From: Octopus sinensis
Lineage: Eukaryota
DNA: 64,000 bases
Reading direction: 5' to 3'
Assembly: GCF_006345805.1 (NCBI RefSeq)
Contig: NW_021832971.1
Span: 20,503 to 84,502, forward strand
In this document: piece by piece, positions 1-47,924 of the stretch
Numbering within the stretch: position 1 is the first letter of the stretch
How the letters are laid out: each line of letters starts with the position of its first letter
Notes under the pieces: model-generated
What the model was told of the DNA's origin: nothing
What the model saw: only the letters and a program-made list of their open reading frames with translations
Databases searched by the model: none
Translations under genes and position numbers: made by a program

Positions 1-2620
1 ATGATTGTTTGTGTATTGAGTCGGATGTTTGTGCAGTTGTCGTCATTAGATGTGCAGCTGAGGAGAATTATCATGCAGTTGTTTGTTGAGCTAGTGTAGA
101 TGCTTGTGCAGCAGATGCTGATCGTTGTTCAGTTGGTGCTATTAGTTGTTCAGCTCGTGTTGTTGGCGATTCAGCTTATGTTGTTGTTGGTTGTTCAGCT
201 GTTGTTGGGTATGCAGCATCTGTTGTTGGTTTGTTCAGCTGATGGAGTTTGTTGTTCAGCTGGTATTGTTTGTTCAGTCGGCGTTGTCAGATGTTCAGCT
301 GGTATTGTCGGTTCTTCAACTGATGTTGTTGATTGTTCACCTGGTGTTGCCGCTTGTTGTTGTTTGTTCTGCAGCAGTTGCTGATTACTCAGTACCTGTT
401 GTTGGTTGTACAGCTGGTGTTGTATGTTCAGCTGTTGTTCTTGGTTGTTGAGCTTGTGCTGTTGGTTGTTCATCCGGTGTTGTTGGTTGTTCAGCAGCTG
501 TTGTTGTTTTTTCGACTGGTGTTGCTTGGTGTTCATCAGCTTTTCTTAGTTGTTCAGCAATTGTTGTTTGTTGTTCTGTTGGAGTAGTTGGTTGTTCACC
601 TGCTGTTGTTGGTTGTTCATCTGGTGTTGCTGTTTGTTCAGCTGGTGTTCTTGGTTGTTCAACTCCTGATTTTGTTTGTTCACATGCGGTAGTTGGTAGT
701 TCATCTGGTATTGTTAGTTGCTCAGCTGGTGTTGTTAATTGTTCGAAATATATTGTTGTTTGTTCGACTCGTATTGTTTTATGCTTATCAGGCGTTTTTG
801 GTTCTTCAGCTGTTGTTTGGTGTTCACTTGGTGTGGTTTGTTGTTCCGCTGGTGTACTTGGTTGTTCAATTGATGTTCTCTGTCGGTCAGGTCATTTTGT
901 GTGTTGTTCAGCTGGTGTTGTTCGTTGTTCAGTTGGTGTTGCTGGTTGCTCAGCTGGTGTTGACGGTTTTTCAACTATTGTTGTCTGTTGTTCGGCTGAT
1001 GTTATCAGCTGTTCAGCTGTTGTTGGCCGTTCAGCTGGTGTTGTTTGTTCAGCTGTTGTTCTTGGTTGTTGAGCTAGTGGTGTTGATTGTTCGGCTGGTG
1101 GTGTTGGTTGTTCAGTGCCTGTTGTTGTTGTTTGTTCGACTGTTGTTGTTTGTTGTTTTTGGTTGTTCAGCTATTGTTCTTAGTTGTTCCAATGGTGTCT
1201 TTCATTGTTCAGCTGATAGTTGTTTCTTTCCTCCTGCTGTTAGCTATTTAGCTAGTCTTGTTGGTTGTTCAACTCCTGTTATCGGTTGTTCAGATGCGGT
1301 TGTTAGTTGTTCAGCTGGCTTTGTTGGTAGTTCGGGTGGTGTAGTTTGTTGCTCAGCCGGTGTTGTTCGTTATTCAGTCGGTGTTCTTGGTTGTTCAGCG
1401 GCTGTTTTCGGTTGTTCAACTGGTGTTGTTGATCGTTAAGCTGGTATTGTCTGTTGCTCTGCAGCGGTTGTTGTTTCGTCCACTGGTGATGTTGATTGCT
1501 CAGCTTGTGTTGTCTGTCGTTCAGCTAGTTTTGTCGGCTGTTCAGCTTATGCTGTCGCTGATTGAACTGGTGTTGTTGGCTGTTCACTGGTGCTGTCCGT
1601 TGTTCAGTTATAGTTGTCTGTTGTCGGCTGTTCACCTGGACCTGTTATTGGTTGTTGAACTATTATTATTTTTTGTTTAACTGGTGTTGTTTGTTATTCA
1701 TGAGTTGTTGTTGGTCGCTCAGCAGCGGTTGCTGCCTGTGCAGCTGTTTTTGTTTATTATTTTTTTTTAGCTGATGTTCTCTGTTGTTCCACGGTGGTTG
1801 TTGGTTGTTCAGATATTGATGTTTCTTTTCCTGCTGCTGTCGTTCGTTGTTCGAGTGGTGTTGTTTGTTGTTCAGCTGTTGTTACTGGCTGTTCAACTGG
1901 TGTTGTTGTTCTAATTGAGCTCTCGATATTTCATCTGGTGCCGTTGGTTCTTCAGCAGCTCTTGATTGTTATTTATCTGGTGCTGTTGTTGTTCAGCTGC
2001 TTGTATGGTTATTGTTGTTGGTTGTTCAGCCGGTGCGGTCGATTGTTCAGCATGTGTTGTTTGTTGCTCAGCAGCTATTGTCCGTTGTTCAGTTGGTGTT
2101 ATTGGTTATTCATCTGTTGTTGTTGTTGTTGGTTGTTCAGCTCATGTTGTCGGTTGTTCAGCTAATGTTGTCGGTTGTTCACCTTGCAACGCTGGTTGGG
2201 CAGCAGCTTTTGTTAAGTGTTCAGTCGGTGTTGTTGGCTGTTCAGCTGTTATTGTCGGTTGTACATCTGGTTTTGTTCATTGTTCAGCAGCTATAGTTAG
2301 TTATTCAGCTGGTGTTGTTGTTTTTTCAGTAGTTGTTGTTAGCTGTTAGTCTGGTGCTGTTGGCTGTTCAGGCAGTCCTGTAGGTTATTCAGCTGGTGTT
2401 ATCTGTTGTTCAGCGGGTATTATCGGTGGTTCAGCTGGTGTTGTTGACTGTTCACCATCTGCTACAGCTAGTTTAGCGACTGTTTTTTCCTCTTTCACTT
2501 GTGTTGTTTATAGTTCAGCAGCTGTTGTTGATGTTCAGATATTGTTTTTGGTTATTCAGCAGCTGTTGTTTGTTCTGCAGGTGGTGTTGTCATTTGTTCA
2601 GCTTGTGCGGTTCAGAGTTC
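1..2620 (-). repeat. Degenerate 21-bp coding repeat (AEQPTTP-like)
   Basis: Plus-strand unit ~ggttgttcagctggtgttgtt, far more diverged than the 27-bp array. Confidence 0.8.

Positions 2621-47924: not shown

Follow-up and report, generated by a model that had tools for sequence, protein, structure and literature searches.

A putative type II membrane glycoprotein gene of Octopus sinensis with two SEA-mucin modules and a decayed terminal repeat array

A stretch of Octopus sinensis DNA of 64,000 nucleotides (nt) (contig NW_021832971.1, positions 20,503 to 84,502 of the forward strand; hereafter the window) carries LOC115229658, which is the RefSeq name of a gene that reads from high to low coordinates on the minus strand. 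On balance, we favor the view that LOC115229658 encodes a type II membrane glycoprotein with two modules, each composed of an SEA domain and a proline/threonine/serine-rich (PTS) block, that its intact frame amounts to about 2,200-3,300 amino acids (aa), and that the distal part of its last repeat array is untranslated. The order TM-SEA-PTS-SEA-PTS (TM, transmembrane segment) and the type II orientation, which an initial annotation made from the letters of the window had proposed, are supported by the exon model, hydropathy, charges and sequon positions. The predicted ectodomain consists of two copies of one module, in which an SEA domain encoded by three exons is followed by one large exon of Thr/Pro nonapeptide repeats.

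The gene model comprises ten coding exons, every splice site of which is AG/GT, and the intron phases (0, 1, 0, 2, 1, 1, 0, 2, 1) match at all junctions. The nine phase-compatible exons of the initial annotation are E2-E10 of this model, and their canonical sites and compatible phases were seen in the DNA. The tenth, E1, contains the start codon and lies outside the range described earlier, 14.6 kb upstream of E2; E2 itself has no in-frame ATG and starts right after a ttgtAG acceptor. The exons are as follows.

62574..62588, minus strand: E1 coding part, ATG GCA TAC CGA CAG (MAYRQ), donor gtaaat, phase 0; identical in Octopus vulgaris
47645..47924, minus strand: E2, cytoplasmic tail, KQKWSKKWR and signal-anchor; acceptor ttgtAG, donor phase 1
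41924..42042, minus strand: E3, SEA1 part a, covering beta1 and the beginning of alpha1; phase 1 in, 0 out; 40% identical to SEA2 part a
31687..31757, minus strand: E4, middle part of SEA1, phase 0 in, 2 out
30328..30482, minus strand: E5, SEA1 part b from the G-S motif (LRKG|), phase 2 in, 1 out
22471..26599, minus strand: E6, PTS1, about 100 non-repeat codons, KEPITTPKA repeats, then TTEEPTTTV repeats
17630..17742, minus strand: E7, SEA2 part a
16084..16151, minus strand: E8, middle part of SEA2
15058..15185, minus strand: E9, SEA2 part b from LRNG|
14682 to beyond position 1, minus strand: E10, PTS2, a 27-nt array followed by a 21-nt tail

Each SEA plus PTS unit is a phase 1-1 module, and SEA1 and SEA2 are each split over three exons in identical phases. 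In O. vulgaris, E1-E5 have equal lengths and the same splice sites, and differ by 6 synonymous and 12 non-synonymous substitutions; the resulting ratio of non-synonymous to synonymous divergence (pN/pS) of about 0.55, from 18 differences, indicates weak constraint on few sites. The junction of the TM exon with SEA1 part a is also present in the annotations of O. sinensis and O. bimaculoides (RefSeq) and O. vulgaris (deposited).

The cytoplasmic N-terminal tail has 69 residues, and the basic cluster KQKWSKKWR precedes the anchor. Residues 70-94, the only TM candidate, form a 25-residue uncharged run with a 19-residue Kyte-Doolittle mean of 2.97; the cluster and the hydrophobic anchor near the N-terminus were thus read correctly at the outset, except that the span had been given as 24 residues. 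A signal peptide was not found, the first 40 residues containing no hydrophobic stretch (best 9-residue Kyte-Doolittle mean 1.3). Among the 15 residues on each side of the anchor, the net charge is +3 on the N-side and 0 on the C-side. All seven sequons (NET113, NSS217, NTT249, NKT256, NVT1645, NGS1651 and NIT1678) are C-terminal to the TM; six were listed initially, exactly as found here, and NGS is additional. Both SEA domains and both repeat blocks also lie on this side. SEA domains and mucin repeats are extracellular modules; therefore, an N-in, C-out signal-anchor is the only consistent reading. The predicted type II single-pass topology is well supported by hydropathy, flanking charge and the placement of the sequons, SEA domains and PTS blocks.

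Within the tail, residues 29-51 (23 aa; exon 2, approximately 47840-47772) form a motif that is kept in the O. sinensis paralog XP_036368988.1 and in O. bimaculoides. The pattern common to LOC115229658 and XP_036368988.1 is TPFWP[FY][LI]F[HN]DPT.[SN]WIG.DD.SL. This motif matched no Pfam family, and a search with a profile of the tail returned matches in Octopus proteins only.

The two SEA-like domains proposed initially were confirmed. The 414-aa RefSeq protein of the locus (P0001) matched Pfam SEA (PF01390) in two stretches (E=1.3e-12, 48.2 bits, against a cut-off of 26.4 bits), and SEA1 and SEA2 share 34% identity. A search of 1.84 billion representative sequences with an octopus SEA profile yielded 42 proteins, from which a diverse alignment of 25 sequences was built; the Gly-Ser pair comprises its only invariant positions. 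The AlphaFold2 (AF2) model of SEA2 based on this alignment (predicted local distance difference test, pLDDT, 85.7; predicted TM-score, pTM, 0.78) has the order beta-alpha-beta-beta-alpha-beta, and Gly64-Ser65 occupies the beta2-beta3 turn, between strands 53-62 and 65-74. When this model was compared with the PDB by Foldseek, the top seven matches were all SEA domains, namely five MUC16 chains, the mouse transmembrane-protease SEA 2e7v and TMPRSS6, with a TM-score of up to 0.82 and 13-19% identity to the solved domains. The structural evidence covers SEA2; SEA1 rests on its Pfam score, exon structure and similarity to SEA2. A PDB sequence search with P0001 returned no SEA entry; the only match, a weak one to the region of DPP6 that forms its type II anchor (E=0.19), was not used, and an AF2 model of the whole 414-aa protein from a 3-sequence alignment was discarded (pLDDT 36, all helices). 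Both domains carry the self-cleavage motif G|S-hydrophobic, LRKG-SILA in SEA1 and LRNG-SLIA in SEA2, from which we infer that they may cleave themselves.

The two huge Thr/Pro blocks of the initial annotation are real tandem arrays, of 27-bp units and, at the far end, 21-bp units, but they do not form one open frame. Tandem Repeats Finder reported 144 copies of a 27-nt unit at 22471-26325 (PTS1), 434 copies of a 27-nt unit at 2931-14595 (PTS2; consensus AAGGCTAAAGAACCAATAACAACACCA, which reads KAKEPITTP) and a looser 21-nt array at 78-2454. PTS1 consists of 40% T, 17% E, 11% P and 3% S, and proximal PTS2 of 24% T, 21% K and 18% P; this composition suggests that the repeats are O-glycosylated. 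Because the Thr/Pro codons of the minus strand are rich in A and C, the plus strand has a strong T/G excess at 1-14.7 kb and 22-26.6 kb. The KEPITTPKA unit is stop-free in just one sense frame. Open reading frame (ORF) length was not used as evidence of coding, since stop-less repeat units yield long frames regardless, and the variability of codon positions among the 27-nt units is uninformative at 97-100% identity at nearly all positions.

PTS1 is close to intact. E6 is 4,129 nt long (mod 3 = 1), and skipping one base near 24629 gives 1,376 stop-free codons. The single lesion is the following.

24612..24660, minus strand: PTS1 lesion, two adjacent units with GAAGACC instead of GAAGAACC, then an aberrant 29-nt unit; net +1 nt

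One lesion in 4.1 kb corresponds to a density of 0.25 per kb, which is below the background indel level given below. E10 falls into three parts.

9790..14682, minus strand: proximal PTS2, KEPITTPKA 27-nt repeats, 6 frame lesions in 4.9 kb (1.2 per kb)
2931..9789, minus strand: distal KEPITTPKA array, decayed, 4-18 frame lesions per kb, GAA-to-TAA stops at 4318 and 4052
1..2930, minus strand: 21-nt EQPTTPA-like tail, degenerate, many TAA/TGA stops and frame switches; extends about 900 nt past the window

A stop-to-stop scan of the minus strand over 1-14.7 kb gave about 20 separate open pieces in alternating frames, and no frame of at least 70 aa extended to position 1; the Thr-rich frame near the window edge has TAA stops at 387 and 178. 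Reading E10 as PTS within the window by a frame-tracking dynamic programme took 111 frame corrections, and with a cheaper stop penalty, up to 958 nt past the window, E10 was read with 82 shifts and 25 retained in-frame stops. Lesions per kb numbered 1, 3, 0 and 2 in the bins from 13 to 10 kb, and 10, 8, 7, 18, 8, 10, 4, 16, 17 and 7 in the bins below about 9,790. The same programme found 10-13 lesions per kb in non-coding sequence (introns), and by lesion density distal PTS2 looks like non-coding DNA. As a background, indel differences between the O. sinensis and O. vulgaris assemblies amount to about 1.4 per kb in clean unique sequence; thus, both PTS1 (0.25) and proximal PTS2 (1.2) are within background noise. 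Proximal PTS2 (9790..14682) is plausibly coding. The density switch near 9790 lies inside a homogeneous array, and could reflect a true ORF end or altered assembly support.

Positions 1-64000 of locus L001 match the window, as its reverse complement, with 100% identity; L001 is the end of the unplaced O. sinensis contig VCDQ01004812.1 (84.5 kb, assembly GCA_006345805.1). Homology searches with non-repeat peptides retrieved P0001, the RefSeq "uncharacterized protein LOC115229658" (414 aa, Pfam SEA), and P0002, an O. vulgaris hypothetical protein (276 aa), both of which begin at MAYRQ of exon 1. P0001 exits PTS1 through a cryptic A|GTGAAC donor (about 26500, after ...RVKDTKT) and joins SEA2 part a at 17742, and this splice omits about 1,340 repeat codons together with the PTS1 frameshift. 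In O. vulgaris, a 2,698-aa Val/Ser/Cys-rich model lies antisense over the PTS repeats (locus L002, 55857-59511, OX597837.1) and is probably an annotation artefact. As the initial annotation had suspected, automated annotation fragmented the gene, leaving 414-aa and 276-aa proteins and the 2,698-aa antisense model; the locus thereby illustrates the under-annotation of repeat-rich genes.

Related loci in octopuses share the modular architecture. The second O. sinensis protein retrieved, P0003 (LOC118767817), led to locus L003 (CM016882.1:3,914,161-3,954,930; 3.9 Mb), in which PTS exons alternate with SEA modules whose identity to SEA2, counting introns, is 94-97%; the order is PTS end, SEA, intact 990-aa PTS exon, SEA and a 14-kb TTTTEHP/TTTTEQP array. 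LOC118767817 has the three-exon SEA and the phase 1-1 PTS exons of LOC115229658, arranged as a series of SEA-PTS modules. Its annotation is limited to a protein of 196 aa, and the fetched range showed no TM exon. No stop interrupts its internal PTS exon between acceptor and donor (2,973 nt, mod 3 = 0, 990 aa), and its terminal 14-kb array is broken by 81 shifts and 5 stops. An internal PTS exon must hold its frame to reach the next SEA, and both loci show an intact internal and a decayed terminal array. XP_036368988.1 ("serine-rich adhesin for platelets-like"; L004, CM016882.1, 25.5 Mb) shares with LOC115229658 the cytoplasmic motif and TM, with 38% identity in the first 100 residues, as well as the three-exon SEA and phase 1-1 PTS exons, whereas its order is TM-PTS-SEA and its TTDQTS repeat is short (about 190 aa). 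Searches with TM plus SEA1 and with SEA2 plus PTS2 as queries returned Octopus proteins only and no full-length ortholog model. In O. vulgaris, the PTS starts directly with TTEEPTTTV units (L002, 55840 onward), and a reverse transcriptase insertion follows SEA1 part b (L002, 50891-52564).

Outside octopuses, the proteins found with the SEA profile fall into two groups. One comprises type I multi-SEA mucins, namely axolotl mucin-1 (13 SEA repeats) and a mucin-16-like protein, which are among the best sequence relatives; the other comprises type II proteins, namely a hemichordate TM-SEA-SEA-LDLa protein, a corin-like protease and two molluscan database predictions, both unnamed: the 2,894-aa oyster protein XP_065925759.1 (Magallana gigas; TM at 77-95, SEA, a Thr-rich stretch, SEA, then 9 SEA and 6 WAP) and GAB1603854.1 of Argonauta hians (TM-SEA-PTS-LDLa-MAM). 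Like LOC115229658, both have an N-terminal internal TM, an SEA and a Thr-rich region; unlike it, the oyster protein continues with 9 SEA, 6 WAP and Cys-rich modules and the argonaut protein with LDLa and MAM, and neither has the octopus cytoplasmic motif. The type II TM-SEA-PTS order is thus found, as predicted from sequence, in other molluscs.

How much of this gene is translated depends on what the lesions in its arrays are. If all frameshifts and stops were long-read assembly errors, the protein would be a giant mucin of more than 6,500 aa extending past the window edge. The odd-length units have features typical of long-read consensus errors: 37 of the 44 fall short of 27 nt, in 31 cases by one nucleotide, and the missing bases are scattered, mostly in short A/C runs. 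Units that are 97-100% identical also hamper read placement, and at both LOC115229658 and L003 the arrays of 3-4 kb are intact or nearly so and only the 14-kb arrays are broken. The distribution of the lesions speaks strongly the other way. The stops at 4318 and 4052 are GAA-to-TAA substitutions inside 225 nt of exact shared sequence, block 4200-4800 recurs as 8038-8638 (601 nt, 3,838 nt apart) with the same three frameshifts in both, and blocks 3880-4135 and 4146-4401 have two frameshifts in common. Since lesions have been copied between blocks and independent read errors are not copied, the lesions predate the intra-array duplications; moreover, the duplication of lesion-bearing blocks means that the array grew after it had ceased to be a clean frame. 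The 21-nt tail is easy to assemble because it is only 62-66% self-similar, yet it has the densest stops, with many TAA/TGA where CAA/GAA is expected. The abrupt change of density near 9,790 within one homogeneous array, and the indel noise of just about 1.4 per kb in unique sequence, also argue against pervasive assembly error. We thus take the distal two thirds of PTS2 to be decayed repeat DNA with genomic lesions, not random read errors, and regard a giant mucin as very unlikely. The first lesion of proximal PTS2, at about 13204, leads to a stop at 13184, 499 aa into PTS2, and the frame with the single PTS1 correction ends there after 2,192 aa; the end of the intact frame probably falls somewhere from 13184 to about 9,780, which corresponds to a product of about 2,200-3,300 aa. 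Under the favored reading, translation would stop within the proximal portion of the last array, and the remaining approximately 10 kb would be decayed, untranslated repeat rather than 3,000 or more further residues. The claim of a frame exceeding 6,500 aa that remains open where the window ends could not be upheld: the assembled frame stops at 876 aa and E10 needs 111 corrections; even with all indels forgiven, the first duplicated stop would limit the product to about 5,100 aa, and a product above 6,500 aa would have to read through 19 or more stops. Of the giant frame as claimed, about one third to one half is intact, and the rest is decayed repeat DNA. The locus shows that reading raw sequence can overestimate genes when decayed repeat tails are taken as coding.

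The same decay could signify that the whole locus is a pseudogene or decaying duplicate on an unplaced contig, yielding at most an 876-aa product of TM, SEA1 and partial PTS, or nothing. The PTS1 frame is broken as assembled, the terminal array is heavily decayed, the pN/pS of about 0.55 on 18 differences suggests weak constraint, SEA-PTS modules of 94-97% identity (introns included) exist on CM016882.1, and the sequence clusters of P0001 and P0002 have one member each, from one contig each, with no further source. We nevertheless consider this unlikely, since, apart from the repeats, all ten exons are undamaged and have canonical splice sites in O. sinensis as well as O. vulgaris, the one PTS1 lesion in 4.1 kb lies under the background indel level, and the cytoplasmic motif is kept in a diverged paralog. 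Far less likely still is a protein related to enteropeptidase and other type II transmembrane proteases of the serine class (TTSPs), in which a protease or other effector domain would lie further downstream on the glycosylated stalk, as the initial annotation had suggested. The TM-then-SEA order is the TTSP stem arrangement, and type II relatives with further domains exist (GAB1603854.1 with LDLa and MAM, others with LDLa, Fz and trypsin). However, tblastn searches (E<=0.01) with trypsin, LDLa, Fz, MAM and WAP segments of the type II relatives found no match in the window plus 1,086 nt or in L002-L004, the search leaving out the last 19.4 kb of the contig, to the left of the window; no CUB exon was found in these regions either. 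The 1,086 nt past the window are degenerate Thr/Pro/Gln sequence full of stops, Pfam gave nothing significant in the open frames downstream of the last array of the paralog, and the cytoplasmic tails of the octopus and Argonauta proteins are unrelated. Many stops close the end of E10, so that no exon further downstream could be read in frame.

Several points weigh against our preferred reading of a type II glycoprotein of about 2,200-3,300 aa. As assembled, the frame from the ATG ends at the stop at 24612 after 876 aa, and treating the PTS1 lesion and the six proximal PTS2 lesions as assembly errors is an assumption based only on their low density and the deletion bias. The exon boundaries are predictions from the genomic DNA read at each junction. 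SEA1 by itself (P0002) scores a borderline 26.3 bits against the threshold of 26.4. In O. vulgaris, the PTS contains about three frame switches in 3.7 kb, and the fetched locus lacks any equivalent of the initial non-repeat and KEPITTPKA portion of E6. The unplaced 84.5-kb long-read contig could also be a haplotig or a decaying duplicate.

If the preferred reading of LOC115229658 is correct, its most likely function, judging from its parts, would be that of a membrane-tethered, shed-able cell-coat mucin of reversed polarity. The densely O-glycosylated repeats would form a stiff stalk of a few hundred nanometres. As each SEA keeps the invariant Gly-Ser, the chain would probably be cut twice in the endoplasmic reticulum and held together non-covalently; the two cuts would provide two force-sensitive release points, at which the outer mucin parts may be shed, with the N-terminal stub remaining membrane-embedded. 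We further propose, as a possibility just short of an even prospect, that LOC115229658 belongs to an octopod-restricted family of reversed-polarity mucins, defined by the conserved N-terminal motif, a signal-anchor and serial self-cleaving SEA-PTS units, which would have arisen independently of vertebrates and in which the SEAs act as successive release points. SEA membrane mucins are usually treated as a vertebrate, type I design. If LOC115229658 is expressed, then the combination of a self-cleaving SEA with a glycosylated rod would have evolved more than once, mucins would be linked to the stem region of type II proteases, and there would be a new candidate component of the cell coat in the skin and sucker epithelia of cephalopods.

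The introns contain several further repeats and mobile elements. A 27-bp minisatellite of about 127 copies occupies 48625-52096 in intron 1; it is G-rich on the plus strand (GC content 0.54-0.58), is open in six frames and has the unit length of the PTS repeats with an unrelated sequence. It was rejected as an extra exon, being in intron 1 and in no gene model, where its product would be cytoplasmic. Immediately after the minisatellite lies a (GTAT)n tract of about 494 copies (52218-54182). Between E2 and E3, a 57-bp tandem repeat (44395-44757; 6.4 copies, 97% match) is purine-rich on the plus strand. Fragments of non-long-terminal-repeat (non-LTR) retrotransposons lie on the minus (gene) strand at 19626-21404 and 45852-46058 (RVT_1, E=1.9e-13; zf-RVT), with further reverse transcriptase-like frames at 42.5-47 kb.

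We found no paper describing the type II TM-SEA-PTS order, and none on an octopus mucin with an SEA domain. The transmembrane isoform of agrin combines a type II anchor with an SEA flanked by Ser/Thr-rich regions; agrin has follistatin, laminin-EGF and laminin-G domains, which the octopus protein lacks. Alternating SEA and PTS domains have been reported for Xenopus tropicalis proteins (Lang et al. 2007, as related in PMC4948705); according to that account these are secreted, whereas LOC115229658 has an N-terminal membrane anchor.

The TTSPs (enteropeptidase, matriptase, HAT/DESC and TMPRSS6) share with the octopus protein a cytoplasmic tail at the N-terminus, a signal-anchor and, next to the membrane, an SEA with G-S, and the likeness extends to structure, as the Foldseek matches include 2e7v and TMPRSS6 9nrc. 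Hydropathy and flanking charge (+3 versus 0) place the octopus anchor at the N-terminus in the N-in orientation, as in TTSPs. In contrast to these proteases, no S1, LDLa, CUB, MAM or SRCR exon was found for LOC115229658, and its SEAs are more than 1,300 mucin-repeat residues apart. With the vertebrate SEA mucins MUC1, MUC3/12/17, MUC13 and MUC16, it shares SEA with Gly-Ser, long Thr/Pro repeat exons and a single membrane span; MUC16 is the most similar, in that its SEA domains alternate with PTS linkers and the SEA2 model fits the MUC16 SEA best (7sa9 and 1ivz; TM-score up to 0.82). The contrast with these type I mucins that was drawn initially stands. Their layout of signal peptide, PTS, SEA beside a C-terminal TM and C-terminal tail is not that of LOC115229658, which has opposite polarity, no signal peptide, an N-terminal anchor, its first SEA after the TM, an N-terminal tail unrelated in sequence, and no EGF domains. 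The octopus protein is an analogue, and not a member, of the vertebrate SEA transmembrane mucins.

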